A DNA stretch of 64,000 bases from assembly GCF_006345805.1 (NCBI RefSeq), contig NC_043001.1, positions 87,544,001 to 87,608,000 on the forward strand, written 5' to 3'. A model generated the notes under the pieces. That model made no database searches and was not told the origin of the DNA. It saw only the letters and a program-made list of their open reading frames with translations. This document shows, piece by piece, positions 3,946 to 63,109 of the stretch (its first letter is position 1; every line of letters starts with the position of its first letter). The position numbers were made by a program, and so were the translations under genes. This DNA is from Octopus sinensis. Lineage: Eukaryota.

Positions 3946-3998
<53 letters not shown>

Positions 3999-4229
3999 TA
4001 GTGTGTGTGTGTATGTAGAACAAAAATTGAATACATGATAAATCAACCCAAGAGAAGGCAAGTACTTGTTGCTGACTGGTAGACTACAAAAATACATGTT
4101 TAAAAACGAAGATAAAAACTTGAAATGATTAATTATAATTACAAAAATGAAAGAAAAATGTTCAAATACTTAAACAATTAATGAGGTATAAAAACTGTCA
4201 TGTTTACATAAATTCCATAGGTTTTGTTT

Positions 4230-5486: not shown

Positions 5487-5860
5487 TGTACTGACAGTAC
5501 TAATTCTGCAACAAAACTATTTCGTCAGAATTTTTTATAGATCTCGTCAGTCGAATAACTTTCACTTCCCTAGAAACTTTAACTTTCACTTCAACTTTTT
5601 CTCAGTCTCACGTGTAAACTACGGAAACAACCGGAAAAGTTTCCGTAACGTTCTTCCTTTTCTTTTAAGAAATTATCGCTACTGTTTCATCTGTATTTCG
5701 CAGCGAATTCTTTATAAATTTTCTTTTTTATAGTCTGTGGATAAAATATAAGCGCATATAATGTTAGTTAAATCAACGTAGCCGCAGTGAAGTTACCCAT
5801 GATGCTGCGCGCTTGACCTTGTCAGTACTGTATTGCTACAGCTAATACATTGTACGAACC
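5487..5860. promoter_or_regulatory. Putative bidirectional promoter between the 418-aa gene (-) and IFRD1 (+)
   Basis: The two ATGs are ~500 bp apart and divergent. CpG retained and repeat-free. CACGTG at 5609, CCGGAA at 5631, Staf/ZNF143-like TTACCCATGATGCTGCGCG at 5793, Inr-like TCAGT at 5822. Confidence 0.6.
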
Positions 5861-5989
5861 ATGTGTATGTTCCTCACCAACAAAATCAACAAATTCTATT
5901 ACTTATATGAATCTGACTTCCATATACGCACGTCTGACCAATTAGTAAGATCTTTTAGCTATAGCAGGACACAACATATAGGAGAATAA
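5861..5989 (+). CDS. Upstream ORF (42 aa, MCMFLTNKINKFYYLYESDFHIRTSDQLVRSFSYSRTQHIGE*) of IFRD1
   Basis: ATG at 5861 has A at -3 (gaaccATG). Its stop TAA (5987-5989) shares its last base with the IFRD1 ATG (TAATG). Mammalian IFRD1 has a known regulatory uORF. Confidence 0.6.
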   Translation: MCMFLTNKINKFYYLYESDFHIRTSDQLVRSFSYSRTQHIGE

Positions 5990-6010
5990 TGCCCAAGGGA
6001 AAAAGAAAAA
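5989..6010 (+). CDS. IFRD1: IFRD1 coding exon 1 (MPKGKRK)
   Basis: ATG CCC AAG GGA AAA AGA AAA A|gtaagt; resembles the MPK-basic N-terminus of IFRD1; phase 1 matches exon 2. Confidence 0.8.
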
Positions 6011-9000
6011 GTAAGTTTTCTTTCGTAATTTTTGCAGGCGTGAGCATTTTGTGGCCAAAAAATGGGTGACCAGTTTGAATAATTCCTGACGTGTAAAGTC
6101 GTTCCCTGTCTTTGTGACCGCCTATGTCGGTTATTGACACCAGTTGCCGTGGCATGGCCGGCTTTGATTATTACAAATGTGGCGGGATTTCACATGATCC
6201 ACACACTCACCTCTTTCTCTCTCTCTCGCCTAAATTTCTTTTCATATTCTATTCCGTTACTACCGATACCGTTTGTCTTCACTATTTCTTATTCGTTATT
6301 TTTTTTCAAGTTACCATTGATATATATTAACACCCATGCCATATTAGTCGCTAAGAGGTTGTAATTAGTCATTAGATACACATTATCTCGGCTACATTTC
6401 TTACTGTAAATAAACAAATAAAATTATAATTGAATATATTAAATTTATTGTCCTGTAGCGAGGTATGGTTCTTAGCCATTTATCAGGTGATAATATATTT
6501 GGTGTACGTTAATCTATTTAGTGTGTGCTTAATACATTTAATGTACGAGCCAACGCGGGAGCCTCTGTGCGTTCATTCGGCTTGCTAGAAATATTAACTA
6601 AATCTTACTCAAATCGCACCCTATCGATCCATTGTCAAATTTATCCCCTGATATGCTAACAAAAAAAGATTGGTCACTCTGTAACGGTATGATCATAGGT
6701 CTACTCGATAAGGGCGGCCTGGGGCCAAACAACTGCTGTTGCGTGTAACGGATGTACGTATGCCCACCCCCGACTTATGTAAGACGTGATTATCTAATAC
6801 CGTAGAAGGTGATCCATAACTGAAAACCAACGTAATGTTTTGGTGACCCCACTCAGCTTTGTTTAGGTAGACTCAAGGTACATAGGTTAAATTATTATCA
6901 TCTAATAAAAGAAATTATATCTATGTCAAATCGGCTACAATTTCTAGCGGAGTTCTTTATGCAACCTTACGTATTCTTTATTTCTGAAATCATCCTTACA
7001 GTTAAAAAATAGAATAAAACGTATAAGTATTCTGTTCTTTATTGGTCAATCCCTTTTACTGAATGGGGGCCACGATTTCCGATGATTTAAATAAACCATG
7101 TGTCTCTGTTTGAGAGGCAATGGGGAGTTTATTGAAGGGAGAGTTTCGACCTGCGTGCTGACCAAGCTGGGCGATTGACAAAATCGTTGACACGCGTGGT
7201 CTATATTGAAAGGACTCTTGCTTAGACCCCACCTGGTCTAGGCATGGCCAACCTGTTTCGAGAAGTGGGCTGCATGAAAAATGGCTCATCATCAAGCGAT
7301 CCACACTAAAATAATTCAAAGTAATGCGGGCCGCATTTTGCCCATGACTGCTATAGACAATCTCCCAACATGTAGTGATGGACTCTTTTGATTACTATCA
7401 GTTAACTTATTGGTACACCTCTCTAGTTCCATGCTTCTGTTTTTATAATAATGTTTTTCAAGGCATCACGAACATATAAGGACATTGATTCCGTTATCTG
7501 ATCACAACCGCCCTAAGTCTTCCACCACCTACGCTGTCGCTCGCTCGGTTTAAGGACAAGCGGTCAAATTTCCTTGATTTATACCTTTCGATTTTAAAAG
7601 GGGACATATTGGCGCTTTTCGTTAATACTGCTATTCCCTCCTCTTAGAAACAGGTACAAAAAATAAAACATAGTATTTTATCCTCTGCTGTATAAATATT
7701 GACAGGTGTATTTGTAAACCAGTATATGAAACCAGGTTTCGGACTAACTATAGAATGAAATAATTTTTAGATTACCGACAGGTGACTAGAAATGCTTCAA
7801 GTACTGTACACTGGGTTCATCATAACAGTGAATGTATTTCACTGAGAAAAAGAGTGAAAAAGGTTTTCTGAATGAAAATTGAGTGTTATTTAATTATTTA
7901 TTGAAAATAGCTATCCAATATTAACATCTTTTAACTTAAATACCTGTTAAAATCCATCAAAAGCGGGTCTTATTTAAACGCAAAATTATTTGCGAAGATC
8001 CTGTTGGAATAATGGAAACGTCATCACATGGATGGCTTTAACAGTTGTTTGTTTCATAGGTGGGTGGCCTGTGAAGGTTGAGGCGGCGGCGGACAAATTG
8101 CCATGTGAAGTAAAATTAAGATCATTTTAAAACTTGTCCAACACTGACGAAGAAAGAATAACATGAGGACAATTTCTTTCTGTTTTGTTGTCACTTTCAT
8201 GACATTTCTTTAATATTGTTTTTGGGGAACGTGGAAACCACCACGTTATAGTGTCTTAGTCGGCTGTCTACTGCCCTCTACTTTCACGTTGGAAGATGAT
8301 CATTTTCTAATAATTTCGTTTTTTCTTCGCTCATGAAAGTACTAAAGAACAAAAATTTTAGATAGTAAGACTCTGCGTCCGTTGCCTTTTGCTGAAAAAG
8401 AGAAAAAAAAAAAAAAAACACGCACACGTCTAAGAATATTGGCGATGCATCTCAAGTTGTCTTTATCTGATGTCTACATTGTTGGTTAACTGAATTCCTC
8501 TGTTCCTCCCTAATAGTGCATCTACCCTAGCTAGTGCCCTTCATTAGCTGAGTGTATTTTCATTGTTCCACCCCTTTATCTCTGTTGCCCCCACCCCTGT
8601 TAACATGCGCATAGTTTTCTTAATTTTACCATTCTGGTTGATCGAACCTTCCTCTCCCAGATGGTGGTGGAAGTAGTTGACAACTCAGACTGTTGCATCA
8701 GCCCAAATGCCTACCAAGCAGTTAAAGCTATGTAACATTAACAGATGTTATCGTCAGAAATATGGCAAAACACCCAGTTTTCAGTAGCACTATATTGCCA
8801 ATAATAGTGATCTCGAAACAAGCACAAAACCACATGTGCAGTGAGTAGGATATAATCGTTTTGGCTGGCCCCTATGGACACAATAAGAAAGGAAAACAAA
8901 GTCGACCTTAGCGAGATATGAACTAGCAGTGCAAAACCATTTTAACTAAATATTGTAAGGCATTTTTTTTTTGTTGGGCGTTCTAGCAATAATAATTCTA

Positions 9001-9515
9001 ACTATAGTATAAAGGGAAGCGGCAAAGTTGATAAGGAAAATGCAGTATATAACCAATATTTATTTTTAAGGTCTTCTAACCTGGGTACCTTTATAGATCT
9101 GAAAGACGAACAACTTTTGGCAGGATTTGAATTTAGAAATCTAATATTAGTTTTCTTTTTCTTACGTCACGAAGATCTTGTATTTTAGGTGAAAGACATG
9201 GAATGTTGTGATACCCATGTAATTTCCCTCCAATGTGAGTGAAATTAGGTTCTAGGTCAGTCCTGATCGAGTAGGCTTATAGTCATAAAAGGAGTTCCAT
9301 TCAGGTTTTTTTTTTATTCAATGTATCTGATAGCATTAACCAGCACTTTCATACTTTATTTTTCGTCTTTTCCAAGGCAGTATGGTGTGATTCGCGGAAG
9401 ATTTAGCTGCTATTTCTAGAAAATTGAACGACCACGTTGGGGCATTTCACTGACTCTTTCCTGTCGTCTTGTAAAGTAGTTTCACACACACACACACACA
9501 CACATTATATATATA

Positions 9516-9563
<48 letters not shown>

Positions 9564-9731
9564 ACGAGAAGAGAGAGAAATACATAACTGCATTTAAAAA
9601 TTTTTTAATGGGAAAAAAGTTATAAAAATGGTTCAAATTTCGTGCATTGTACGGAGCTCTCAACCTTTGAGCCACTTTAACTTTCTGCCGATTAAAAAAA
9701 AGTTTAACCATGTATTGAGATTCGCCAATGC

Positions 9732-9770
<39 letters not shown>

Positions 9771-10065
9771 ACACCAAATGTAATGGCACGTCCTCGTATG
9801 GGTTAATCCAAGGCATCGGGAGTTTTTGGTGTCTATTTTAGTCAATTCCTTCTTAACCTGGCTTATTGCTTCTGGTTAATGGTGTTTCCCCACTTTATCT
9901 CCCAACACGTGACTCCCTATCTGTGACAGATGGAAACTTCATTTAAATAATTATATAATATCTAATCTAATGATTTATAAGATTCCAAAACTGCTCTCCC
10001 TGTACCGTTAAACGTATGCGAGTGTGTGTATATATATATATATACATACATACATACACTCGCGT

Positions 10066-10111
<46 letters not shown>

Positions 10112-10407
10112 ACACCAAATGTAATGGCACGTCCTCGTATGGGTTAATCCAAGGCATCGGGAGTTTTTGGTGTCTATTTTAGTCAATTCCTTCTTAACCT
10201 GGCTTATTGCTTCTGGTTAATGGTGTTTCCCCACTTTATCTCCCAACACGTGACTCCCTATCTGTGACAGATGGAAACTTCATTTAAATAATTATATAAT
10301 ATCTAATCTAATGATTTATAAGATTCCAAAACTGCTCTCCCTGTACCGTTAAACGTATGCGAGTGTGTGTATATTATATATATATACATACATACATACA
10401 CTCGCGT

Positions 10408-10441
<34 letters not shown>

Positions 10442-13400
10442 CATATACACGTGTGTGTGTGTGTGTGTATAGAAATAGAGCAATTTGGCCCACGTGTACA
10501 ATTCTTGATCACCACCACCACGACCAAAATGTCAGCTGGTTTCTTGCCTTCAGCTGCTACTTACTACCTACCCATTCATGTCTTTTATTATTTGTTGTTC
10601 TTTTTTTAAACACATTCAGCTTTCGTGGTTTTCTTTCGTTTATAGTCACGTCTAAAAATTTTTAAGGGACTGAAGACTGCACTTTGGAAGATTGAGTAGA
10701 GGTCTAAATAGCAATTTAGAAATTCCAAACAATATAGCTATTTTTCTCCATTTCGTCTCGGTTTCCTATCCGTAGCCTACATCTAACTTTTACGGTACTT
10801 TCCACTTCTGTTTGCCACTATTTGACAGGTGTATTTGTAAACCAGGTTTTACAGTACTTTCCACTTCTGTTTGCCACTATCGTTCTCATTTACAATTAGA
10901 AATTTTTTATTTTAAATAATTTAGCTTCGGCTGCATTTCGAATCTTACACTCTGCCTGCAATCATATCGTTTTACATCTTGTCCACTCTGATCACATCTG
11001 TTTATTTTTCGATTATAATTTCATCTCGCTTATTGTCTCAATTTATGTGGTAATAAACTGAGATAATAAACATTGTGTCCAGATTATTCTTTTATAATTT
11101 CACTCATTTTCGTCATGGATAAGCATGTTTGTATAGTTGAAAAGTTCGCTAGCACTTTGTTCTAAGTTCGATGTCACTGCGCAGTACTGGGTAAGTGACT
11201 TCACCTTATACGTAGAATCCGGTTGACAGGAATTTTGACGAAGCCCTTGTGTGTGAATGTGTACAGGTGTCTTTTCCTGCTCCGTAACTTAGCAGTTTCA
11301 CGAATAGAAATCGATAAAACAAAGTATCAAATTGAAATAAGTACGTTTTTGTTTGCCTTGAAATCATCATTCTGCTTACACTAACAAATGAAACGAATTA
11401 TTTTGGCGTGGCGTGAATATTGTTTAGTACCAGTCGTATATTGGTAAAAGAAAATCAGTTTCACATAAAACCAACCATGCTGGGGTACTGCTTTGAAGAG
11501 TTTTTTTTTCTTCGAAAAAATCGATCTCCTTACCTTTTTCTTTTTTAAGTCTGGTACTAGTTGTTTTTTTTTTTGTTGAACTGCCAAGTTACGGAGATGC
11601 AAACAAACCATCACCAATTGCCAAACTGTGTGGATACTCATAAACAACACACACAATGGGTTTCTATCGGTTTCTGTCTGCTAATTTCACTCGCGGATGT
11701 TTGGTCAACCTGAAGCAATTGTAGAAGGCACTTGTGGTTGGGAAGCTAACTTCCTATCACAGTCATACCTGCGTCTTTAGCATTTTTTGTGGATATTTTG
11801 ATTAATCTTTTTTGTAGGGGAAACTGTTTAAGAGGGAATAAAGTATTAGGGGTCACCACTTTGTGGTAATGGTTAGTGGTGATGGTGGTGAGTAGCAAAA
11901 TACCTCTGGTATTTAGTTGCATCACTTTACACCCTTCATTCAGAAGATGAAGAACTTAAGTTTGGGGGAAAGAAAGCTTTTGATTTCTGTTTGAAGGTTA
12001 TTCCACTTTGGGAAAGTATAAGCACCACCATGCTGTCTGTTGAGTTGAGAGAACTATTATTATTATTTGGGATTGACAAGTCAAGTATTGGGATCAAGCT
12101 AATTTATTATGCTCCTTTCCCAAGATCTAACACTGGATCTTGTCAAACCATGCAACACATTCCAGCATGGAAAACAGCTGTGAAACGATAATGATGATGA
12201 TGATTGTAATATAAATAGTAGTGCACTGCTGTCATTATAAAGCAACCAGTAGAACACTACTTACGTGGCAGATGTCATCGACACAACCATTTACATAAAG
12301 TGCTAGTCAGTTTCCTCAGTTGTACCCTCTTGAAATTGAGGATTTTTGCTAATGTATGAAATCTTTATTTTACTGTGCTTAAGTAAAAAAAAATTTTAAA
12401 CTTATTTTTAATTTAAATTGTCTTGTAAAAACCACGTTCACAATTGGGATTTATTAACCTGTCACTACTACCATTGAGTTTTATCACGTTTTCTTTATTG
12501 TGATGAGTGTAACTATTCAAATTTGTTTTGTAATTATTATAAAATAGGTCTTTATATTTTAAAGATGGATTTAAATCAGTCTGTAGAGTGGCTGTCCTCA
12601 CTGTGCAGAAAAGGAGTCCATATGAATTTCCATATAGTGTACAAGGAGTGTAGTGGAATCACATTCATATGATATGCCCGGTATAAACTATAGATGCACA
12701 AGGGATCATGGACACATTATCAGGGAAAGGTAGCTGTATATATGGCAGACATAAAGTAGTAGTAAGATATGCATGATTTTATAAATATTTGGAAGGCCCT
12801 ATCAAGTTGTAGTTGATAGCTTTCATTACCTAGGTAACTTAATTAGTAGTAGTGGTGGTGTGTGTTCTGAAAGTATTATAGCCAGAAATACAAATGTGAT
12901 GGGGAAATGTTCAGGGGATTATTACATCTGCTGGCAACAAAGAGTTTTTCTCTGAGATGGTACAAGGTGTGTGTACAAAGTGCGATATTGTATGTTAACA
13001 AGACATGAACTTAGAATGCAGGAAAGCATGAACAATGGCACAAATGAATCGTTGGGGTGGAGTTAGGGCATAAAAGTAATTGGAAGTTATGTGCTAGAAA
13101 AGATAACACTGGAGTGAACATGCCACTTGCTCCAAGTGGGTGGAACCTTGGGGGGGGGGAGATCAAGAAAGACATGGGACTAAGTGGTGAAGGCTGATGA
13201 AATGACTAGGAATAGCGACTTGTGGAAAAGTGTCGTGCTGGAGAGGACCTGTCCAATCTATGCAAGTATGGGAAGGTGGTGGTGATGAATATTGGTGTGT
13301 ATGTAACTGTTGGTTCTCTCCTGACTATTATGTATGTTCACATTTGCATCTCCATATGCTGTTCTTCCCATCCAACATCACACTAAACATGTTTGTATTC

Positions 13401-15045
13401 ACTTCCCAGTTTATCATCACTCTTTATTGTTAGCCATCTCTCTTCTATGTCATTACTCTAATTATTAACACCCCCTTTTACTATTATCCCTTTTAATGTT
13501 GTCCATCACACTCACTTCAAATACTCTATCTAGTCATTCTCTTCACTCATTTTCTTGTTCTATTCCATTACTCTTTAGTTACTCTTCCATCACACTTTTT
13601 TGAGACCACCAAGTCTAAGTGAGTGAAAGAACAGAGACCTGATAGGTTAAAGAGTTTCTTTTAGTCTTGCCAAGCTGTTACAGATTACATTCTGTAAAGT
13701 GGTTGACAAATGAACTATGACAGTGTAGAAGAGAGGGAACATTTTGGTCCTATTGCAAACATAACCTCTCCTGTACTGGTTGTACTAGTACAACAGTGTA
13801 TTACATTTAGTATTCTTTGTAAAGTTGTTGGCAAAAGGAAGGACATCCAGCCATAGTAAAACCTATTAAACATTTAGAGTCTGAGACTAGGTCTCTGTCT
13901 GACTTGGCTAGGAGGGAATTAACAATAAGAACTTGATCTTTGGTGACCTGTCCGAACCATACCAGCATAGGAAAGCAAATGTAAAGTGATGATGATGTGC
14001 CTGCCTTCATCTACTACTTGACTATTACAATTTAGTTCTGCTGTTTTTGACTTCTATAGTTATGAGTTCTCTATTAACTGCCAAATATACATGCATACAT
14101 ATATCACCCATGCCAGCAAGGACAGCATACGTTAAACGATGATGATATAAAGTGTGAGGTTGCATGGCCTAGTGGTTAAGGTATTGCACTTATGACCACA
14201 AGATTGTGGTTTCAGTTCCTAGACCATGTGGTGTATTGAGTTCTTGAGCAAAACACTTCATCTCATGTTGCTCTGCAAGCAATTTGCTGCCTGACATGTG
14301 GCACACAGTGCACATGCTCAGATAACATCAATTTGATGGAGATAGTGAGATAGTGCAGCACGAACATTTGATCACTATAAACAAATCATCTGTGCAGGTC
14401 ATTTGGCAAAAAAAGTTGAACACTCATATGTTGTCTTCAACAAGAGAGTCCATCATATATATATTAATACAGTTTTGAAAGCACCCAATGTGGGGTTTTC
14501 ACCAGAAAGTTATTGTTTCAGTTATTGGACTGTAGCCACGCAGTGGATCTTAATGGCACTCCATCAGTTATGACAACTAGGATTCCAGTTGCTCTGATCA
14601 ACGGAACAGCCTGCTCATGAAATTAACCTGTATGGGCTGAGCACTCCACAGACATGTGTGCCTTTAACGTAGTTCTCGGGGAGATTCAGCGTGACTGTGT
14701 GACAAGGTTGGCCCTTTGAAATACAGGTACTATAATTTATATATATAAATAAACATGTCCATTGGCCTGAGTTTCCATGGCTTTGAAACTACAAAGTAAT
14801 AGGTTACTACTGAATTGGCTTAAACCACTGTTACTCTGCATTTGTATGAGTATTTATAGTGCAAGTCATTACACAAGTTTGAGTGCATGCACAGACACAC
14901 ATATTTGCATGCCTGCATTCATGATACAATACTGGGTGTGAGAATCAATATAACTTTGTTTTATAATTCTGTAAAGGAATTTTAATTGTGTCTAGGCCTT
15001 TGTGTATATATTTGCATACAACCGATGTGTGTGTAATATACATAA

Positions 15046-15080
<35 letters not shown>

Positions 15081-18000
15081 ATACACACACTTAATTAGTT
15101 TTCATATAGCTTCCCTTTATCAATAAATATATTAGCATATAAATTATTTATTTTCGCTTGATGATCACATATGTCAATTTAAGCACTATAGATCTTAAAC
15201 ATATGTCTATACATAGGCCTGTCTTAATCACACACACACCTGTCTGGGTCACACACACCCCCGCATAGACTTCACTGTCTATATGCATCTCACACACTTA
15301 CATAATATAGATCATGTATGCATACATCTATGTTGAGTAGCCTGAGACATACACATGCAAACGTTTGTGTAAACAATGTATACAAAGGAGATGCATGAAG
15401 TCATCAACAGAGTCAGACCACATGTCAGCTACTTGTGTAGTGCTAGAAGTGAAGTTGTTAGTAAAATATTTCACTAATGTAGTCACTAAGATTATATTTG
15501 TTGGGTGGGGTTATCTAATGAGTTGTATATAGCTGTGAGATGATGGGCAGAGGGGATATGTATGGCTTTGCCTGGTTTAATTACTTAACTTCCCTTCCCT
15601 CTGTCATATAAACTTAGTCTTTTACCTACTCAAAACTCTAGGCATACTCTCTTCTTCCACAATTTCCATTTCACACACAAATTGTGTCTCAAACGTAACT
15701 GCTTACACTAACATATTTCTGTTGAAATATACTGCCTTTTGAAACTAATGAAGAATTTAGTAAAAGAACTTTGTAGTTATTCTTTCCTGAGCGTCCAATA
15801 ATACTATATATATACTATATTGTGTTTTTTTGTGCTTTCTTGTTTGGATTAACTTTGTAGTTATTAAACTGGTGTTAATTTAGATCACTTTAAGACTGAA
15901 AGTTTGTATCATAGAAGCATTGCAACTTGTACGTTATTGTTGAGTGTCTCAATCTAGCACTGTTTTTCATGTTCTAGTTAAATGGCCTTCTCATTACCCA
16001 AAAAAATGTAGGTATTTTGAAGAAACTTTTTTTCTTAAACAAGATATTTGGTCTGCCATTAACATCTTGATTATGAGTTGGGAACAGTACCTAGTTATCA
16101 ATCAGGAAAACTATGGTTGGCAGAACTATATACTTTGCCTATGATTACAACAGTGACTGCTCTAACATGACCATATGGTGAGATTGAACTGACAGTTTTA
16201 AACTACTAACCTCCTGTATTCTTAGTCTAGTAGCTTGAATTTGGCCCTTTATGTATATATGTGTGTGTGAATATTTATCACCAGCATTATTTTATATTTC
16301 TGTTTGTATAGTGTGCCCTCCCCTTTCTAGATCCCCACTCTTATCCATTGTTATTTTGTAAACTAGTACAATGGTCATGTAAATAATTAGAACTTTCCTG
16401 GTATACTTTGAATATTAATTAAATATTGTAGATAATGCATGACATAGTTTGACAACTATTCAAGCTGTCATTCTGGCATAAACACACACAGACACCAAGA
16501 GTTGAACTCTTTATCTACACCAACTGTAGATATGGACTTGTGAATTTTGTGGAGGTGGGAAGAAGCTAAGTGAGACTTTTCTAATAGTGCTTTGACTGGT
16601 GTTTTCAATCATGATTAGAACTGTTGCCCTTATGTCATTCTAGTTTTTATTTAGTTAGAGACACCCAGCTGTATACATGAAAGGGGAGAGAACTGAAGTC
16701 ATATTAACCAATCCCTGGCGATCTCTGTTTGTGAACACCTAGTCCATATCATTAAAATTACATAATGATGATTGGCCTCCCTCTTCAGAGCCAGAAAATA
16801 CTTCAACCCTTAATGATTACTACTGCAAAGCTTAGGTGAAACCCACAGTGTAATAATTCTCCCACATGTGGGATGGTACTGCTTACTTGCATGCACACAC
16901 CCTAGACCAGGTGTGGGCAACCTTTTATGAGAAGCATGTTGTATGCAATATAGCTCCTTGTCAGGTTGGCTGCACTGCTAAAACAATCTCAAGGTAATTT
17001 CTCATTGGACATGCCATTCAAAAAGTTCTGTGGGCCACACTTTGCCCATGACTCCTAGATCCCTGCATCCAAAGTAAAAGCCTCTTGTTTGATTGTCATG
17101 AAGTCCTCACAGTCACAATGCAATATCTGGTTCAGATATGTTTTCTCTTATCCTCCCCTTTCTCTTCTTTGGTTCCATACCTCCACTAAATGCATTGTTG
17201 TTGCTCATATTGTGTACCCTTGTTTAAGACCTTGCCCTAGCTGTTAAACTCGGTTCTTTCTCTCCAGAATGTTGGCCCTTCAAGAGGAATATTAACCCTG
17301 TCTGTTTCACTTGTCTCAGAAGGCTGGCAAAGGCTACAAGCATAGCCATGTATATCTCGTGTCAATAACCTGTCAGACAGCATTTGCTTAACAGCATTTT
17401 TTTTCTTCCTTTTTCTCTTTGTTGTCTACCAGCCTTGCCAGCTGTTATAGTCTCTTACTCTTGCTTAGGTATATATATATATATAATTTTTTTTTTTTTT
17501 GTCAAAGCAGAAGGGGCATTATTGACAATCTTTGAAGAGAAATACACACTGGCTAGAACGTGTTGCTTTTGTTCTACTTTTCAATCCTCTGTCTCCATTC
17601 TAAAATCTCAATTACCCCCATCAACCCCTGTTTATGCATTCCTAACAAACAAATACTTTAGAAATTACTTAATTTTTCTCCTTTGAAAAAGAAACAACAG
17701 AAATTTCCGGTAGCCCCTTAAGGGACAGGGCTTAACCCTAGTTTTATTTCCTTCAGATAGAGGAAAGATAAATCACCACAGATAGTTCAGAATACTAACA
17801 TATTTTAGCATTGTACAAACATAATTAAATGCCTGCAGCTGATTTGGAATTTGCAATCAGGAATTATTAGTAAATATATTAATCTCCACTTATAATATTT
17901 ATACCTACTTCATGATTTTAAGTAAAGTAATTGTGAGAATATTAAGTTGGAGCTAAGAACTCTTCTTTAAGGGCTTGGTTGGGCTACTGGAGACTTTTAG

Positions 18001-19835
18001 TGTTTTGGATGAAGATCAGGTATTTTTTAAGCTATTGTTTCTTAGGGATGCACAGATAGGGGTGGTAGGGTACTGTGTACACACATGCATGCACTCATTC
18101 ACTCCTATATTATCATAGCTTTTGGGGGGGGGATTGATGTCACTGCCTTTGTATATTCCTTTTGCACAGTAATGTGTCCAGGTGTTGGTACTTTACACAG
18201 TAGCATGTTCCAAGTGTTTAGATTTGACATCTCCATGCAAATCTCTTGTTTTATGGGCATAACTGCATGGTTCTGAAGTTTGCTTCTCAACCATGTGGTC
18301 TCAGGTTCAGTTCCACTTATGCAGTACCTTAACCATTTTGTTACCAACCCGACTGAAACTGGCTGAGTACAAATGTCTTGTCATAAGTTTTGAATTAAAA
18401 TCTTCCACCAAACCTTAGTCACAATTTATGTTCCTAACTTTAGCTGATTGATAACTAAGATTTTTTACTAAATTCTTTGTTATATTTAAAGTAATTGAAA
18501 GAAACACAGAGCATCTCAAAATAAATACAGTTAATGAAAGAGTTAAGTGGTTGTCTTCTACTCTAGCCCCAGGCTGACCAAAACCTTGTGAGTGAGTTTG
18601 GTAGATAGAAACTGAAGAAACCCATCAAGTGTGTGTGTGTGTGTTTGTGTATGTACTCTATTTCTGATATCACATGACAGTTGTAAATAAGCCTCACCAT
18701 CATTCAAGCAGTGTTTCCAGTCTTGTGTATGTTTGTCCCCCACCACTGCTTGTTAACAGGTGTTGGTGTATTTACATCCCCATAACTTAGTGTTTCAACA
18801 AAAGAGACCAATAGAATAAGTTCTGGGGTTGATTAGTCTAACTAAAATTCCTCAAAGTGGTGCACCAGTATGGTTGCTGTCTAATGACTGAAACAAGTAA
18901 AAAATAAAAGAAAGATAACAAAAAGTTATAATCTAGAATGATAATGGAAAGTTTTAATTGCAATTTAACCAAATTAAGGTTAATAGCTAAGGGCTCTAGC
19001 AAAAATGTTAATGTACCAGATATGTACTAGTAGTTAATTTAATGGTTGTAGAATCTTCTACTCTGTACCTTCCACTTTCACTTCCATTCTATGTCTGACA
19101 TTCTTTCAGCCTTTTTCTATTTGGTTCTTAATATTTTTATTTTATTAAGGCAGCAAGTTGGCAGAAACGTGAGCACACCAGGCAAAATGCTTAGCAGTAT
19201 TCCGTCTATCTTTACGTTCAGAGTTTGAATTCTATTGAGGTTCGACTTTGCCTCTCATCCTTTTGAGGTCAATAAATTAAGTACCAGTTGCATACTGGAG
19301 TCAATCTAATCGACTGGCCCCCTCCCCAAAAATTTTGAGCCTTGTGCCTAGACTAGAAAGGAATATTTCTTATTTTATTTCAGTTACCATTATATTAATA
19401 GACTTTTATTTTCTAGATATGGATTTTCTTTCCTTAGGTACACATGCACACATTTGCATTTACAAATACTAACAGAGTGATCCATATATGTTGCAAACTT
19501 ACTCTCTAAAAATCTACAGCGTTGCATATGCTCATGAAATTCCAAGTAGCCAGACAATAAACAATCTTTAAATTGTGTGTCCAACCTATGCCAGCATAGA
19601 ACATGGATGAGAAAGGATATATATATATATGTTGATTCGTTAGTTACTGCACGCATTTTTTTTCTCTCCTTCTATCTGTGTTTTTTTTTCTCTCTGTGTA
19701 TCTTTCTGTTGAAGAGCGTAGGCTCGAAACGTTAAAGACTTGTTTTATTTATATTTCCTGAGCGCCATACTAATACAATTGTTTGTTTGTTTTCCACCTG
19801 CCTTCGTCTTTTGTCTATTTTCATAAAGCTTCCTG

Positions 19836-19878
<43 letters not shown>

Positions 19879-22800
19879 TGCATATACACACATGCATACC
19901 CACCAATAAGATAACTACAAAGTACCCATGCACCCAAAGTATAGACACATACAAGACAACCATGCCTGATGATTACAGCTGCTCTCCACAAATCTGTAAT
20001 TCAAACTACCACATGTGCTCAAGTGCACACATACTTCTATAGACTACTTTTTTTTTTTTTTTGTAAAACACATGAGCCTGTACGCATGCACACACACACA
20101 AATATGTGTGTATCTTTGATCATAAAGTAGTCATTAGTCTTGAGATTCTCACTATTCAGTTTTTGTGTTGAAGGTGAGATTTTCATTGAAAGTTTATTGA
20201 CCTTAAGTATTGACTTTTATTTCTCTAACAAACTGTATTAGAGAAAAAGAGTATGTGTGTCTCTTTTTACATTTTAGCTAATTAGTTATCTCTTCTACTG
20301 AGTGACAGTCATCATAGATAATTGTTATTTGTTCCTCAACTCATAATAACTTTTATGTATCCAGATTGATAAGAGTTGCTTAAGTACAAGAAATTGGAGT
20401 CAAATCTCTTTCAAATCACATCCTACCATTTTAAATAAAGGCTGCATTAGACAGTATTGTCTCTGATATGCAGAAAGATTGAATGATGATGGCAAGAATG
20501 CTTTTGATCACGTCTTCTCAGTCAGGGTTAATTTGAGGTTAAACAACAATTTTTTATGGAGATATGTAGCTGTGTGGTTAAGAAGATTGCTTACCAGTTA
20601 TGTGGTCTCCAGTTCATTCCAACTGTGTTGCACCTTGGCCAACCAAAGCCTTATGTTTGGATCTGGTTGACAGAAACTGAAAGAAGTCTGATGTCTGTAT
20701 GTGTATATATGTGTGTATCCTTATTTAGACATCCTGTGTTGGTTGTAAATGGGTGTCATCATACAAATGAGGTTGTCCATTTTCAGTCTTCTCTGATTAA
20801 CTTGTCTGACTCTCACTTGGAAACAGGTGAGGGTTGATGACAGGAAAAAAGTCTAACTGCAGAAAATCTGCCTCTCAAAATGTCTGACCCAAGCTAGAAT
20901 AGGAATGTGAACATTAAATGATGTTGATGTTTATGCACTATCATTTCCAACCATGTCTATTGCCATAAATTATGAATTTTTATCTGTTCACCAATGCTCT
21001 GTCTTACACCAGTTCCATTATATCATTTCCCATGCAGCTCTCATGGTGTAATTCCAGATTCAGTCTTGGTGAAAACTTTTGCTCACAGTTTAGGATCTGT
21101 AAGAGAGAGTTGAAACTTGGAAGTGAGGATTTGGAATTGTTTTGGTATTTCTGTCAATGTAATGGTATTGCCACTAACTACTGAGATAATTATGTAGTTC
21201 ATAGTTCCATGGAGTATAACTGTCAGTTCATTAATTTTATATCTGTTTTCCATGTTAGTATGGGTTATAAGAATATATTATTAGGCCATTGTTTTACAGC
21301 TGGATACCCTTCCTGTTGATAACCCTTACCTGCTTTTCAAGTAAGGGATCTCTATTTCAGATGTCTTTGAAGGCACAAAGCAAGCAGATGGTTTTATTGG
21401 CAAAAGACACTGAAAGCTTGTAGCTTGTGAATGCAAATATAAACCAACACACACACACAATTATGGGCTTCTTTCACTTTCTGTCTACCAAACTCACTAT
21501 GCTTTGATCAGCCCAGGATTATAGTAGATGATACTTGTCCAAGGTACTACATGGTGGGACTGAACCTGAAACCAGGCCTGCATAGTATCTTATTTGTCAA
21601 TGTAACTATTGACTCTACCTTCACAGTATAACTTGAGCAGTAACAAACCAAATGAGCCTGCATGCACCTATAGAATTTGCAAGAAATAATAGCCAAATCT
21701 CCCTCAAATTGCACCCTAATATCTTGAATGTGGAAGGATATAATAATGTAGTCCAAAATGTGCAACAACTGAGATAAAGATGGGATGGTCCTGGCCAGAA
21801 CACTTTTGACTATTGGCCTGTTCAGTGAAGGCTGATTTGGAATAGCAGCAGTGATTTCTATTACTGGTTGATACAGGCTCTTGTTCAGATTCAACAAGTA
21901 TATGTGAGACATCTTTCTGAATAAGAAACCTTGCCCGCATGCCAACTTTGAAGCTTTTCTTCATATCTAAACAAGTGGGCAGGTTAGACTCCTTATGAGT
22001 TGTATGTTATTGTTGCTCTCAGATTTCTCTGTCAGATGTAATGCTTATTTACACATATTGTTTTGAATTAATTGTAGCTACAAGATTTTGATGATGTGAT
22101 TGTTTATTTTTACAATGACATTGTAGGATAGGTGTGAGAGGCCAGATATGGCCAGCTTAAATGCAAAAGGGGTTAAATCCAGGCCAGTCCTGATTGAGTA
22201 GACTGATGATCAAAGATATTCCAGCCATGACTTTTTTTTTTTATTGAAAACCCTATTCAATATATTTATTTAAAAATGGTTTTATGATTTGAAGATTTGA
22301 CTGCTATTTCTGGTAAACCATGTGATCATAAAGAGACCTGTCTCTCCTAGATTCGATTAGTTGTATGCCTGGAGGTAAATATCCCTATCTTTACATAATT
22401 CAACCATCACCTTTCATTCCATTGTCTTTTCAGGTTTACATCCCATCTATAGTTGATCCAGTGTTTACCTAGGGTATTTACTGTAAAATCAATATAAATA
22501 CAAAGACCCCACTCTCTACCTTGGCTGTTTACCTGGATATTCTATCTATGGCATCAACAATATGTTAGTACACTCACTATTTGTGTACTCAGTATAATAA
22601 TAGCATAATGGAATTAGCTTTCTTTCTGCTACTAATTTCTTTGTTTTCCGGTACTCTCTGGCAACATTACCAATAAACATTTAGACTATTAGTCATTATT
22701 CCACATTGTCCTTGTTCCACTCTCTTACACAGGAACCAAACGATTAACAACTCCTGTCACTACCACCACCACACCTTCCTACTGTCTCCATTAATTTACT

Positions 22801-25800
22801 TAACATTCTTTTTCTAAAATAAAATAAAAAAGAATTATTTAAGTATGAAGTGACCAACTCAGTAAAGCTACCAGACTACTATCTCAGGTGACTTATATTT
22901 CTGCTCAAGATACTTAACCGTTTTGATACCAGCCTAGCTGAAACTGCCTCCAGCTCTAGTACAAATGTCTTGTTTTCAAAAGTCTGGATTAAAATTTTCT
23001 ACCAAACCTTAGTCACAATTTATGTTTCTAACACTAGCTTAATGATAACTAAGTTATTTTACTAAATTCTTTGTTATATTTAAAATTAATTGAAAGAAAC
23101 ACAGAGTACCCCAACAAAAATATGGTAACAAAAGGGTTAATTCAGTGTGCTTCAATTTATCTTTTAGGGGATATTAAATGCAATAGACTAGTGTTCTATT
23201 CATATGGTGTGTGGTTCATTAGTGCAATGTTACACAGCTTAGAGACAAATTGCCCTATGGTAGAAGTAACATTATTGCTTTGGTAAAGTATTGGACCACC
23301 ATTTGCTCATGGATTGTAAATTCAAATAAATTCCAGGTATTGTGTTGTGTTTCTGAAGCAGTACACTTCAGTCTACATAACCTTGGGTCAATTAGTTGTC
23401 AGTAATAGATTCTTGATAATTTGCAGATGTTATCTGTGATAGACTATCCAGAGAGAGATTAACCTTATCCATTTTGTATCTTAATGCCAAAACCAAAGCA
23501 CCCTCCCTTAATCCTTTTATTACCACATTTCTATTGAAATATGCTGCCTTTTCTCAATTAATTTTTAAAATGAAGAATTTTGAAAAGTAACTTACATTTT
23601 TAAGCTGATGTTCTGGCTCCTTAAGTTTTGATTTCAAATTCCGCTGAGGTCAACTTAGCCTTTCATTCGTCTATGGTCAATAAAATAAAATAGCAGTCAA
23701 ACATGGGTTGATGGTGTGAACTAAACTCCTCCCCCTCCAAATTGCTGCCCTTGTGCCTAAATAAGAAACCATTATTAAGCTGGTTTTTGGAACATAAATT
23801 ACCATGAAATTTTAATGGTTTGTGCTAATCTAGAACACTTTAAAACAGGAAGGTTTATATCAAAGAACCAGGTACTAACTCAGACTGTTTGGTATCAAAA
23901 GCTTTTAAAAGAGCTCCTTCTCCAGGGTACATACAATATTGGTTTTTTTTCTTTTTTTTTCTTTTTTCCCAGTTGTCCTGGGAACAGTTTTATGTTAAAA
24001 CTGATCAGATCTGGCCTCTCACACCTACCCTTTGGAGATTATGAACCCAAATGCTCTATAAAATCTCTTCTCCCCACTGCCATATAATTTACTATTTGTT
24101 GTTTTGTTGTGACTTCACTGATGGTTGATCATGACATTGAGTACTTCTTAACACAAAAAAAAAATCCAATAAAGTTGAAAAAATAATTTAAGATGGATTT
24201 TCTAAATTTATATTGGCATCCTAAGTGTTTAATGTGATTTGCATGCTCAAAAAAAATGACTTTCTTATTATAATTACAATGTTTATTAATGGCATTTCCA
24301 GCTAGATATTTTTCTATGATTGTGCCTATATTGCTACCACCCCCACCTCTGAAAAATTATTCAGAACCGCTGCTGAAATGGCTTTTTGTTCTCTATTCTC
24401 TCTGTAACAGTTACTTCAAAACAGGAAGTTTATATCATAGAGCCAAGGTCAGTTACAGGTGTGTTGATCTGAAAATAGTTTGGCAATTTATTGTGTTATT
24501 GACTCAGTTGAACTTGACTACTTTGTGACATACAAAGTTTATGAGGCAAGGAGGGCATGTAGTCTCTTGCTATGAAGAATACTGGCAAAAAAAAAACTTT
24601 TAAATTTCAAACAACTGTTGCCAGTGTTTGGATTCTAAGGGAGTTGATATTGATTGAGAAAGAATGGGAAGTTTTCTGGTGTGTAGAATTCCGTCCATAT
24701 TGGAGTTGTTGAATAAACTGTTTCAAGAAGCTACAAGTTTTATATGTTAATGACTTTATTCAACAACTAATGATATGGCCTAACGTCCACCTTAAATTTC
24801 TCCATGTGCTAAATTACATGTTAAGCACTTAAGCATTTAAATCAGCCATATCCAACTCAAATATTCTACCTGTTTTATGTTAAAACTGATCAGATCTGGC
24901 CTCTCACACCTACCCTTCAGTGTCATTCACAAAATAAGCGAGCACATCATCAAAGTCTTGAAGCTCTGAGATTTTGCATGATTAATTCAAAATACTAAAT
25001 AAATATTGTATCTGATAGAGTAATCTGAATGCTGAAGGGTTAAAGAATACAGTGTCTCAGAAAGAAATTTCAAAGTTTAATTTGCTGTGTGAGCTACAGT
25101 TGCATCTCAACTATGAAAAGCATATTGCACTTCCAAATTATCTACCAAGCAAAAATTAAGCACTTCAACCACAGCCCAAGAAAGTGCATCAATAACCGAA
25201 TAGGAATGACTGGAGGTAAATTCCTGACCTGCTATCATGGTAATCTCTCCGACTTCAGAAACACTAAAAAACAGCCTGTGACCAAGCTCTCCAGTTACAT
25301 TTGCTGTAAGAAGTGGCATCTAATTTATATAAAGTTGAATATAGAAAACTCAAGGACAGAAGAAGAAAAAAAATTAAATTTCTGTATAACTGAAAAAAAG
25401 ATTAATATTGAAACACAGGAGAGGGAACTAGATTTCTTCCTTAATTTAGAATCAGAAGTCCTTGGAAAATGTAGACACAAGTGAAAATTCATTCTAAGAT
25501 CTTGAGTAGTGCTTTTACTACTAAACTTACTGGTACACCTAGGCACCTTTGTACCAATTCTGCTACCCCTGCATCAGAGTTAAGCTTTTAATACCTTCAA
25601 CCCCTCCCCACACGCATGCACACAAACACACACACAATCCAGAACTTGAGCACTCCACTCAATATTCTTTCATACCTCAGTTAAATTATATATCCTTTGG
25701 TTTATTTATATATAGATTTGTGACTGTTCCATGGCACTGAAGTATTTTTGACTTCTATTTTTAGTGATGCAGGTACTTTGTAGTACCCTCGTGTGTGTGT

Positions 25801-28800
25801 GCATATATAACCAACAATATATTCAACAACTAATGATTAGTAATCGCATCATCAAAGTCTTGCATTTCATCTAGCCACCTTAATTATTATAATTTTCACT
25901 GTACAGCTGGTATTTGCTTGCCACTAATGATGGTATTTTAATAGTACCATCATTCTTATATTTATTTATAAATATATAGATAGGTAGATACAGAAAATAA
26001 TAAGGTAGCTAGACTCAATTCAAAGTCAAAAAGGAGATAATTCACCATCACTAAACAGTGATAAAGTGTGCAGGGGTCACCAATATGGCTAGAAATAAGA
26101 ATGAAAGAACTTTTTAGCCACAGAAAGCACATTTTTTTTTTATTAACTGACAGGGGAGACAACCTCTCCACCATAATTGAGTAGCATTCGATTGGCATGC
26201 CAATTTTGCATGAAATTTGATGGTAATGTGAAAATTATAAAATAATTAAGGTGGCTAGATGCAAATCAAAAGAAATAATTCACTGTCACTAAACAATGAC
26301 TTCACTACCCACAATGGAGTAAACATCTAGACATTTTAATTATTTTATAATTTTCACATTACCATTTTGTGGAATCAGCCACTGATTCCTATGGTAAAAT
26401 CTATATATACTGACAGAGTAGAATTTAACTTAACCAGCTTCAATGCCACAATGAAGTGAGTATTACTTGTGGGCATTAAATTTCATGCGAAATTGGCATG
26501 CCAATCTAATGCCACTCAATTGTGGTGGGGGTGTTGTCTCTCCTGTCAGTAAACAGAAAATGTGCTTCCTGTAGCTAAAGAGTTCTTTGACTCTTATTTC
26601 AAGCACCCTTTGTCACTGTTTAGTGATGGTGAATTAAAGATATATATGTGAAAGACTGGAAAAATTTGGTATACTTTTTTATAACATTCACCAGAAATTT
26701 CAAATTTATGTATGCCTAATTCAAATGAAACCTCTATACATATGATAAATTTAATTACTGTGAACATGATGTGCTTCATGAGGACACAGCTTGGATTATA
26801 GCCCCTTGCACACACACACACACATGTAATATATATATGTATCCATTCTCTTATCCATCCGTTTTAACTAGCCAACCTCTGTATCTGGTGTTCCTTCGGT
26901 TAGCATTCTCAGTCCGTCTCCTTCCTTTGTTGTTGTCTTTAGTCCTCCTCTTCATCTTTATCTTTCTTTTTCTCTTGCAAATATTCTGCAGTGAAGGAAA
27001 GTAATTTCCTCAAATGAGGTAATTCAAAAATATTTAAATCTAGATATGTGATCTTAGACATAAACAAATAGATATATTTACATGTGGCTATAAAACAGAT
27101 GAGTTATGGAAAAAGTATTTGATATTCTCTTTTGCTTCTCTTACATGTAATTAATTTGTGGTTGCATTCTGGCTTAATTAAAATGTGCTATCGCTGTTCT
27201 ACTTTCATTTATCTACGCTTGTGTGAATAGGATAGCTTTTGCTAATTTGAATTTAAACATTGGGAAAATTGTTCTTAGAGACAAATGTGTAGTAAAAGAA
27301 AATTCTTAATAATGAAGGTGGTGTTCTGGCATGGCCTTAACTGTGATAAACAAGAGGTAAAATTGTCATTCTCCCATCAAGCAGCTCACCTTAAACCTGG
27401 GTTGCTCTGCACTGTCAGGATTAGTGTTTAACGTTTTCTCTTCTGTGATGTTTACTGCAATAAAACATTTTTTTGACTTTTATTTTCAATGTTTTCTTTC
27501 TTTTTAACCAACAATTTTTTTCTCTTTCTCTTTCATTGACAGCAGGTCGAAGAGGGGCTGGATCACGTCCCTCGAGTGACGATGAAATTGACACACCTGA
27601 TAACCAAAGCGTTGTCAGTTCCATATCAGATGATGGTTACTTCCATCCCATTGCTGAAGAAGGACACGGTAATTATGTGTTATTTTTGTTATTATTAAGG
27701 TAGGGAGCTGGCAGAATTATTAGAGCATTGGAAAAACTGCTTGGCAGTATTTCTTTTGGCTCTTTCTATTCCGAGTTCAGCTCCATCTGACATCAACTAC
27801 GCTTTCCATTCCCCCATGATTTATAAAATAAAGTAACAGTCAAGTACTGTGGTTGATAGTATTCACTAACCTCTTTCTCCTCAAAATTATTTTGTGTCTT
27901 AATCAGAAGCCATTATTAAGATGATGAATAGTAGATATGGTAGTGTCAGATTAAATACCTTGCAACATTTAGTTACATTAGTGTATGCTCCAAGTAGAGA
28001 TCTCTCTTTTGTTTTTTCTTTCATTCCTCTAGGATTGGTATAGTTAGTTTAGGTTATGTATCAGTGTTGGAATATTTCACTATATCGCTTAACTTTCAAT
28101 TAAAAACTTATGTTTAGTATGTCTAAGAGCTTATGAATCGACCTTGTACTAATGTAAATCATATTATTTATTTTATATTATAATGAAGGCAGTTTGACAG
28201 GGTTTTTTTTTTTTGTTAATTTGAACATAATTGTGGCATAGTGTCTTTATTTTGTTTTGTTTTTTTATTTTACAGTTGACAGGTTTTCGTATTATTAATT
28301 CAAGTGATGAAAGATGTCTTTTTTTTATTAGATAAGCATATGCTGAGTTGTATGCCCTGCTAGAGAGCTGATCATGATAACTAGTTGTAATAAAGTTTTA
28401 ACTCCTGGTCAGTCTGTGAAACATTGGTGGCTCTTAACCTGTCAGCCAGCCTGAAACAACTTTTGGTTCTGTAATGCATGCTTCTTGTTTTAAAGTGGTC
28501 TAAATGAGAACTTACAATTAAAATTTCATGTTGATTTTTCTAAGCACTAGCTTAATTATAACAGTTATTTTATTCCATTTGTCATAATTTTCAAAATTAA
28601 TTGAGGCAGAGGCAGTGTATTTCAATAGGAACATTATGGCAAAATGATTAAGTATATATTGGGTCATCCCATAAATAATGCAGTTTTTTCAATTGCATGA
28701 ACTAAAAGTCGGAGGGGGACAGGATAAATTACCGGCATCAACTTGCTATAAAAGCAGGTAGTAATTTTACTTTGTACTTATTCTTAGTGCAAATGTTGAA

Positions 28801-59055: not shown

Positions 59056-59164
59056 CTGAAACATAGAATATACTGTTTGTAACATATCTTTTGAATGATA
59101 CACACACATACAGAGCTATATATATTTATAGATACAGATATGGCAGACACATAGGTATGGACGT

Positions 59165-62769: not shown

Positions 62770-62777
62770 GGTTCGTG

Positions 62778-62866
<89 letters not shown>

Positions 62867-63109
62867 ATATATATGTATGTGTGTATATATATGTGTGTGT
62901 GTATATATATATATATGTATGTATGTGTATATATATGTGTGTGTGTATATATATATGTATGTGTGTATATATATGTGTGTGTGTATAGATATATATATGT
63001 ATGTATGTGTATATATATATGTATATATATATATGTATATATATATATAGTATATATATATATATGTATATATATGTATATATATATATATAATATATGT
63101 ATATATATG

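Follow-up and report, generated by a model that had tools for sequence, protein, structure and literature searches.

IFRD1 is one of the textbook cases of an mRNA that resists the integrated stress response with a single upstream open reading frame (uORF), and whether leaky scanning, ribosome queuing or stalling underlies its behavior is still debated. A regulatory uORF of vertebrate IFRD1 is reportedly described in Zhao et al. 2010. Here we analyze a 64,000-nt stretch of the Octopus sinensis genome (NC_043001.1, positions 87,544,001 to 87,608,000, forward strand), referred to below as the window, which carries an IFRD1 gene preceded by a uORF of 42 codons whose TAA stop shares its final A with the first base of the IFRD1 ATG. 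Comparison among species indicates that the octopus uORF is a conserved-peptide uORF (CPuORF), orthologous to uORFs in other cephalopods, in a gastropod and in a bivalve.

In human IFRD1 one repressive uORF gives resistance to eIF2 inhibition; changing the upstream AUG (uAUG) to AUA raises reporter expression 8-fold and abolishes the resistance, a single uORF suffices, and delayed reinitiation is not the mechanism (Andreev et al. 2015, PMC4383229). A better base at +4 slightly raises repression and an unstructured leader ahead of the uORF is required; this leader is 19 nt long, and the uORF stop is found 43 nt upstream of the main AUG (PMC4383229). Repression of about 8-fold, resistance to eIF2-alpha phosphorylation and sensitization to nonsense-mediated decay are known only in human and mouse (PMC4383229). 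Translation complex profile sequencing (TCP-seq) of human IFRD1 revealed leaky scanning together with queuing of preinitiation complexes across the uORF (PMC7619398), and an elongation stall on the uORF has been suggested, though not demonstrated (PMC9648851). As for the protein, the mRNA channel of inactive ribosomes is occupied by IFRD1 in Drosophila testis and by IFRD2 in reticulocytes (PMC12056609). An earlier note on the octopus DNA had drawn on both points, the repressive human uORF (PMC4383229) and the IFRD proteins in the mRNA channel of inactive ribosomes (PMC12056609), and its statements agree with these papers.

The octopus uORF is like that of vertebrates in being a single AUG-initiated uORF near the 5' end of an orthologous mRNA, behind a short unstructured leader, with an identical start context (A at -3, U at +4) and a length of 42 codons as compared to 45-53. 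An Ile-Gly pair is found at or near the C-terminus in both (the vertebrate peptides end in SSIG), a similarity that is not statistically significant. The mammalian and frog IFRD1 transcripts that we inspected carry uORFs of 51 and 45 codons, whose peptides both begin with MYR..SQ.FTG and end with RR.SKKCSSIG; the uAUG contexts are aaacATGt and aaaATGt and their stops are located 43 and 98 nt before the main AUG, a layout that agrees with the published description of human IFRD1 (PMC4383229). Unlike these uORFs, that of octopus has a stop overlapping the main AUG, and its uAUG is positioned at -128 rather than at -199 or -235; the mollusc element, moreover, is known from sequence alone. Judged by its place in the mRNA, the mollusc uORF shares the position of the experimentally characterized, repressive uORF of vertebrate IFRD1.

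Two further groups of described systems invite comparison. CPuORFs that act through the nascent chain include the fungal arginine attenuator peptide, uORF2 of human cytomegalovirus gp48, and those of AMD1, DDIT3/CHOP and AZIN1 (uCC) (general knowledge; PMC9648851, PMC10275272). The octopus uORF is like them in the purifying selection on its peptide, in its repressive position upstream of a regulatory gene, and in having its conserved residues in the last 20-22 positions, which would lie in the exit tunnel at termination; it differs in that there is no sequence similarity and that its putative stalled terminating ribosome would cover the main AUG. The second group consists of the termination-reinitiation systems of caliciviruses and influenza B segment 7, which use a termination upstream ribosomal binding site (TURBS), and of SART1 (PMC10275272). 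These share with octopus the pentanucleotide overlap and a downstream ORF that is out of frame, whereas the upstream ORF in octopus is a uORF of 42 codons and not a long main ORF, with no UGGGA motif, supported structure or covariation.

That the octopus uORF is part of the IFRD1 mRNA is shown by a Logan assembly contig of run SRR3401912 (L001; 1,638 nt), which encodes a 434-aa Octopus IFRD1 and aligns to the window as a fully spliced transcript of 12 exons. Its first 176 nt (L001:1-176) correspond to window positions 5835-6010 with one mismatch (99.4% identity), whereas the eleven other exons are 92-100% identical to the window. The divergence across the exons indicates a sister Octopus species as the source of the contig, and among the long exons that of the leader is the best conserved between the two species. 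The contig begins 26 nt ahead of the uAUG and holds the entire uORF, unbroken as far as the main AUG, so that there is no intron of the 5' untranslated region (UTR) between the two AUGs; the earlier prediction that position 5861 belongs to the mRNA is thereby confirmed. More than 20 independent decapodiform transcript contigs also contain the equivalent uORF and start 14-43 nt 5' of its AUG, many of them in a GACCTTG-CAGTACTGT block that corresponds to window positions 5815-5831 and is also found in Argonauta genomic DNA. Most transcript contigs start inside or just past the CAGTACTG block, and the promoter-proximal blocks are common to the window, Argonauta genomic DNA and a cuttlefish-like contig. 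From the contig starts and the conserved block, the transcription start site would lie near 5822-5835.

From position 5861 the window reads cgaaccATGtgtATGttc, and the frame is open for 42 codons. This reading bears out the coordinates claimed previously for a 42-codon uORF ending in TAATG, and the claim of a 22-nt first coding exon followed by a 21.5-kb intron likewise proved correct (Table 1). The "good" start context holds in part: the uAUG (cgaaccATGt) has the favorable A at -3 but T (U) at +4, which makes the context intermediate, as in human IFRD1 (PMC4383229). The uORF is neither a 5' extension nor an alternative N-terminus of the main protein, whose MPKGKRK opening is typical of the N-terminus of IFRD proteins. 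The only other upstream ATG-initiated ORF is an out-of-frame one of 12 codons nested within the uORF, and a pair of permissive and inhibitory uORFs of the GCN4/ATF4 type is thus not present; the nested ORF is probably carried along by conservation of the uORF, a function of its own being without independent support. As 8 of the 2,667 ATGs in the AT-rich window (36% G+C) stand in a TAATG closing an ATG-started ORF of at least 40 codons (0.3%), the observation in a single sequence is not compelling alone. We judge the uORF to be beyond chance because it is conserved in other species.

Within the cephalopods, two decapodiform lineages, whose main protein is only 72% identical to that of octopus over its full length, carry a uORF of 43 codons in the context tgaaccATGt that ends in TAATG (peptides MCIFLLASKIQKFYYLYECDFHIRTSDQLIRSFSYKRTQHIGE and MWMFLLASKIQNFYYLYESDFHIRTSDQLVRSFSYKRTQHIGE), with the uAUG at -131 relative to the main AUG as compared to -128 in octopus and Argonauta. 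Genomic DNA of Argonauta hians contains the same uORF with the last codon changed from GAA to TAA; the peptide ends in HIG and the end of the frame reads TAATAATG, two tandem in-frame stops of which the first leaves a 2-nt spacer and the second overlaps the ATG. Argonauta also has the 22-nt, phase-1 first coding exon. The sole indel in the cephalopod uORF alignment is one whole codon, and third codon positions account for 15 of the 22 variable columns (binomial p=0.0009). Between octopus and the decapodiforms the uORF differs at a proportion of 0.08-0.09 of nonsynonymous sites (pN) and 0.32 of synonymous sites (pS), with a ratio of nonsynonymous to synonymous rates (dN/dS) of 0.2-0.24, whereas the main coding sequence has a pN of 0.167 and a saturated pS of 0.82; between octopus and Argonauta the dN/dS of the uORF is 0.085. 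By these measures the pattern of substitution is that of a translated ORF under purifying selection, and the check for selection on the peptide that had been suggested earlier thus returned codon-periodic substitution and a dN/dS of about 0.2.

The same element is found well beyond the cephalopods. In genomic DNA of the abalone Haliotis rufescens (L117) a uORF of 42 codons (MSMWSRQNSLDTTICYHLDFHICRFMGLGNRRTNWRFRKIGK) precedes the MPKNKKK start, with the uAUG at -128 as in octopus, the context ctgacaATGt, a second ATG at codon 3 and TAATG at the end, and here too the first coding exon has 22 nt and phase 1 (L117:2191-2212). Another candidate for the Haliotis first exon, beginning MEQG at L117:2001, was ruled out, the MPKNKKK start being at L117:2191 with the uORF upstream of it. 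An oyster transcript (L014), the main protein of which is 87% identical to that of Saccostrea, has a 41-codon uORF from -128 (MRMEFSCDNNNLTKIYLPDFHIRRHSCLRNFKRYKSIGQLK) that ends in TAATAATG, with tandem stops and a 2-nt spacer, and a spiralian metatranscriptome contig (L031) has one of 43 codons from -131 that ends in TAATG. The architecture common to all of these is a uAUG 128-131 nt before the main AUG, a uORF of 41-43 codons, and a stop on the AUG or 2 nt before it; octopus shares its AUG-NNN-AUG start pair with Argonauta, one decapodiform lineage, Haliotis and oyster.

The conservation extends to the peptide. In alignment A4, which includes the cephalopods, Haliotis, oyster and L031, residues M1, F20, H21, I22, I40 and G41 are invariant; the FHI motif is always located 19-20 residues before the last residue, and Ile-Gly, encoded by ATA GGA/GGT, is present in every long mollusc form. 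The conserved residues use differing synonymous codons by lineage (GAC/GAT, TTC/TTT, TAT/TAC, CGC/CGA/CGT, GGA/GGT). The similarity of the octopus and oyster peptides is significant at p<=0.0003 (shuffling/permutation), and octopus and Haliotis have 10 identities in 41 ungapped positions (p=1.4e-4). With the alignment of mollusc uORFs as query, a 5.8-billion-protein database yielded no match at E<=10, indicating that the peptide is unannotated and not a fragment of a known protein. The octopus uORF thus shows the properties by which CPuORFs are recognized, i.e., a peptide shared among distant taxa and a Ka/Ks (nonsynonymous to synonymous ratio) below 1 with substitutions of the coding type. 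The earlier note had envisaged a cephalopod version of the IFRD1 uORF; the uORF is indeed present in cephalopods, yet it is not specific to them but at least mollusc-wide, as the uORF and its stop/start geometry are present in Argonauta, two decapodiform lineages, Haliotis, oyster and L031. Absence from related species, which the note had named as a refutation, is thereby clearly excluded. The distribution places the origin of the uORF no later than the ancestor shared by cephalopods, gastropods and bivalves, groups whose split is roughly half a billion years old.

Other spiralian IFRD leaders carry shorter uORFs of 27-30 codons that start at -122 to -137, mostly end in HIPS and have their stop 32-46 nt upstream of the main AUG (metatranscriptome contigs within L026-L033, plus L042 and L100). 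These short invertebrate uORFs are like that of octopus in the position of the uAUG, in A at -3 and a pyrimidine at +4, and in preceding orthologous genes; they differ in length, in the place of the stop and in the peptide. The HIPS-type peptides are mutually similar (p<=0.005), whereas mollusc, HIPS-type and vertebrate peptides show no significant pairwise similarity (permutation p 0.1-0.9). An hhalign comparison of the mollusc and vertebrate uORFs, which aligned the C-terminal IG segments FSYSRTQHIG and RFSKKCSSIG, gave P=0.07, and hhalign with the short forms likewise gave nothing significant. As neither test was significant, we do not claim peptide homology to the vertebrate or to the short forms; a common origin of the three types is plausible though unproven.

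What the wider set of leaders shares is the start of the uORF. A at -3 together with a pyrimidine at +4 is found in 14 of 14 IFRD uORF starts examined, frog and mammal included. In the invertebrate leaders (L014, L015, L026-L034, L040, L042, L080, L100, L102, L116 and L117) the uAUG precedes the main AUG by 122-138 nt, whether the uORF has 22 or 43 codons, and this narrow range of spacing may reflect the geometry of ribosome queuing; vertebrates share the start context but not the spacing (-199 and -235). No uORF reaches 8 codons in six invertebrate leaders (L030, L035, L036, L038, L039 and L041, of which L035 and L036 are branchiopod), and the 20-codon uORF of a sea-urchin leader is unrelated. 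Leaders devoid of a comparable uORF mean either that the feature is not universal or that these contigs are truncated at the 5' end. Two branchiopod-like metatranscriptome contigs, L034 and L037, share a different uORF peptide (CTDC[DE]Y..PILSLSL) with a stop 50-52 nt before the main AUG, which suggests an independent or strongly diverged CPuORF at IFRD in arthropods.

Based on these data we propose, with moderate confidence, that the octopus uORF is a translated CPuORF that acts repressively, that its terminating ribosome covers the main AUG, and that IFRD1 is made mostly by leaky scanning. Most scanning 43S complexes would begin translation of the peptide at the uAUG or at the twin AUG of codon 3, and the ribosome terminating at UAA, possibly slowed by the nascent peptide, would sit on the IFRD1 AUG and block it, whereby the uORF would hold IFRD1 synthesis low. 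The main source of IFRD1 would be the minority of complexes leaking past the uAUG with its conserved weak +4 pyrimidine; 40S subunits that engage the overlapping AUG anew after termination would contribute less. On the model of human IFRD1, phosphorylation of eIF2-alpha would decrease initiation at the uORF, and synthesis of IFRD1 would be spared or raised under stress. The pyrimidine at +4 is conserved everywhere, which points to leakiness being a designed feature. It is from the conservation pattern only that we infer a peptide-dependent pause at termination.

Several observations weigh against this proposal. Translation, repression, stalling and stress gating in molluscs are all deduced from sequence. 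The mollusc and vertebrate peptides show no significant similarity (p 0.1-0.9; hhalign P=0.07), and the human mechanism is carried over on the strength of position and context, not of demonstrated homology of the uORFs. The exact stop/start overlap is broken in Argonauta and oyster, and in other invertebrate IFRD leaders the uORF ends 32-53 nt ahead of the main AUG, so that occlusion of the main AUG cannot be essential to the wider family. Finally, the uORF has changed far less at synonymous sites than the main coding sequence has (pS 0.32 versus 0.82), which shows that some constraint on the nucleotides adds to that on the peptide.

The earlier note had raised the possibility of coupled reinitiation rather than leaky scanning. 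With termination-reinitiation as the main route, nearly all ribosomes would translate the uORF, and the 40S subunit, remaining on the mRNA after termination at UAA, would restart at the overlapping AUG; IFRD1 output would then be a fraction, fixed or regulated, of uORF translation. All long-form mollusc leaders examined have kept UAAUG or UAAUAAUG, about 15 of the 16 nt around the stop/start (ATAGGARAATAATGCC) are identical in octopus and abalone, the tandem AUGs at codons 1 and 3 would lower leakiness, and UAAUG/AUGA overlaps serve reinitiation in caliciviruses, influenza B and SART1 (PMC10275272). However, the efficiency of reinitiation drops with uORF length, and the known cases with long ORFs require a structured TURBS with complementarity to 18S rRNA (PMC10275272). 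The octopus uORF has 42 codons, and of the TURBS features it has the overlapping stop and restart but neither the 18S-complementary motif nor conserved structure: the core UGGGA (TGGGA) was not found in 5790-6010, the octopus 18S itself not having been compared, the predicted fold does not exceed shuffled sequence in stability (z=+0.75), and covariation is absent. In addition, a universal pyrimidine at +4 of the uAUG is hard to explain if leakiness is irrelevant, TCP-seq shows leaky scanning on human IFRD1 (PMC7619398), related invertebrate and vertebrate leaders work with spacers of 32-98 nt, and Argonauta and oyster tolerate a spacer of 2 nt. The overlap itself remaining its one positive argument, we regard reinitiation as an unlikely main route, and the suggestion that it acts rather than leaky scanning is not supported.

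A more speculative extension, to which we give slightly less credence than to reinitiation, is that the IFRD leader is an ancient ribosome-queuing sensor coded by spacing, in which a leaky uAUG about four ribosome footprints (122-138 nt) upstream of the main AUG is combined with an FHI...IG stall in a homeostatic loop. Whether the uORF is long or short, this spacing of the uAUG is held in molluscs, in a beetle and in spiralians outside the molluscs. In the mollusc leaders the nascent FHI...IG peptide would cause a termination stall placed exactly on the main AUG, and ribosome load and collision frequency on the leader would set the output of IFRD1, a protein that plugs idle ribosomes. If true, such a sensor would close a homeostatic loop between ribosome availability and ribosome hibernation. 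The feedback loop envisaged in the earlier note, in which ribosome state would set the level of a ribosome-silencing factor, is well founded in the literature as far as the protein is concerned (PMC12056609).

The selection on the peptide that we take to support a CPuORF would be equally expected if the uORF encoded a stable micropeptide acting in trans, its conservation reflecting a function of its own instead of, or besides, control in cis; the human IFRD1-uORF microprotein did score in CRISPR viability and Perturb-seq screens (PMC10032668). We consider this improbable, as only about six residues are invariant across molluscs and the sequences are wholly different between phyla, no resembling protein exists in the 5.8-billion-sequence database, and the best-kept feature is the geometry, with the start at -128 and the stop on the AUG, which is a property in cis.

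More improbable still is that an element at the RNA level (a protein-binding site, a structure or an internal entry site) is what is conserved, with the ORF being incidental. Of the long exons, that of the leader is the most conserved between the two Octopus species, divergence at synonymous sites is much lower in the uORF than in the main coding sequence, as noted above, and a 13-bp pairing between the uAUG region and the 3' end of the uORF is predicted in all four cephalopod sequences folded. Yet two variable positions break this long-range helix, and the alignment fold of the four cephalopod leaders has no compensatory pairs (alifold covariation term +0.5). The fold of 5824-6010 (-25.2 kcal/mol) is not below that of shuffled sequence, and the whole window has no Rfam match at gathering score. 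RNA structure as the explanation was accordingly rejected. Moreover, substitutions in the uORF have a periodicity of 3 nt (p=0.0009), the indel is in frame, and the ORF, its start and its stop are retained where the nucleotide sequences of the lineages have otherwise diverged. That the uORF is a chance ORF without function in an AT-rich leader, a configuration seen at 0.3% of the ATGs of the window, is effectively refuted: the same arrangement recurs in seven mollusc lineages, with residues kept and divergence periodic by codon.

The identity of the gene and the layout of the locus are as follows. A first tblastn search with a human IFRD1 sequence gave six clear plus-strand exons from 34 to 51.5 kb, and their concatenated translations in turn returned Octopus IFRD1 proteins, which map back to the window as 12 exons with identity at or near 100% and so establish the gene as IFRD1, in agreement with its previous naming. 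The window agrees with the O. sinensis isoform exactly at the positions where O. vulgaris differs, and the precomputed Pfam families of the homologues are IFRD and IFRD_C. The coordinates are collected in Table 1.

Table 1. Features of the IFRD1 locus, in positions of the window (uAUG, upstream AUG)
Feature	Position	Strand	Remarks
Conserved promoter-proximal blocks and putative transcription start site	5793..5831	+	TTACCCATGAT at 5793-5803; GACCTTGTCAGTACTGT at 5815-5831
5' leader before the uAUG	5835..5860	+	at least 26 nt, probably about 37 nt
uORF	5861..5989	+	42 sense codons and TAA; peptide MCMFLTNKINKFYYLYESDFHIRTSDQLVRSFSYSRTQHIGE; read from the window sequence
uAUG and second in-frame AUG	5861..5869	+	uAUG 5861-5863; second AUG 5867-5869 (codon 3)
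Nested out-of-frame ORF	5907..5945	+	12 codons, MNLTSIYARLTN; inside the uORF; every cephalopod leader has one
uORF codons 19-23	5915..5929	+	D-F-H-I-R, with the invariant F-H-I core of the mollusc peptide
uORF codons 40-42	5978..5986	+	I-G-E, with the invariant Ile-Gly near the C-terminus
Stop/start overlap TAATG	5987..5991	+	uORF TAA 5987-5989; IFRD1 ATG 5989-5991
IFRD1 exon 1, coding part	5989..6010	+	22 nt, MPKGKRK and 1 nt, phase 1
Intron 1	6011..27542	+	21,532 nt; from spliced contig L001 and protein mapping
Alternative first coding exon in intron 1	8707-8731		MPTKQLKL and 1 nt; donor GTAACA at 8732
IFRD1 exons 2-12	27543..51456	+	approximate; tblastn of Octopus IFRD1 proteins and blastn of L001
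Exons 2-4	27543/27546-27667, 30338-30424, 32178-32261	+	approximate
Exons 5-7	34129-34323, 35354-35410, 38474-38650	+	approximate
Exons 8-10	40492-40602, 41588-41722, 45924-46058	+	approximate
Exons 11-12	46685-46789, 51370-51456 (stop)	+	approximate
IFRD1 3' UTR	to at least 51639	+	

The donor GTAAGT (6011-6016; A/GTAAGT) directly follows exon 1. The acceptor of exon 2 is a tandem CAG/CAG (NAGNAG) at 27541-27546, so that the exon begins at 27543 or at 27546; the two outcomes, KRKTGRRG and KRKSRRG, explain the isoforms of these sequences that are annotated in both O. sinensis and O. bimaculoides, and contig L001 splices to the upstream acceptor. The alternative first coding exon within intron 1, joined to the downstream acceptor of exon 2, reads KLCRRGAG and matches isoform X2 of O. 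bimaculoides (MPTKQLKPCRRGAG). An mRNA that starts from this exon would be without the uORF leader, which parallels human IFRD1, where one of two transcript variants is reported with the uORF.

The surroundings of the gene hold further ORFs. An intronless ORF of 418 aa at 4230-5486 on the minus strand, divergent from IFRD1 and with its ATG about 340 nt from the putative transcription start site, matches no Pfam family and is 57% identical (E=2e-117) to a gene arranged head-to-head in Argonauta hians (L116:1318-2307, minus strand), which indicates that it is a real and conserved neighbor of IFRD1; it probably shares a bidirectional promoter region with it. Downstream of IFRD1, a Ser/Thr-rich ORF of 455 aa (57740-59107, minus strand) without a Pfam match may be a single-exon gene or a large exon of a neighboring gene. 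A 129-aa ORF in an IFRD1 intron (43024-43413, minus strand) has a weak PHD-finger match below the Pfam cut-off (E=7e-4, 20 bits as compared to a cut-off of 24). Long microsatellite tracts of the TG/TA type, which translate as CVCV/YIYI, are found at 3658-4023 and 62768-63217.

The regulatory uORF of IFRD1 and CPuORFs in general are already known. As far as the literature searched shows, what is new is a mollusc-wide CPuORF at IFRD1, its conserved stop-on-start geometry, and the start context and spacing that recur among invertebrates; our literature search found no paper on an invertebrate IFRD uORF, although an earlier listing is possible in the supplementary tables of the ESUCA catalogue of animal CPuORFs. 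Molluscs have kept an IFRD1 uORF with a fixed start position, length and context and with its stop on the main AUG. In the mollusc element, a variant supplied by nature, the main start must be occluded by the terminating ribosome, and this offers a sharp test between models of obstruction and of reinitiation. Conservation also singles out a few residues, FHI and IG, as targets for mutation. Taken together, the distribution of these leaders suggests that control by a uORF is ancestral to the IFRD family of ribosome-silencing proteins and not an invention of the vertebrates.

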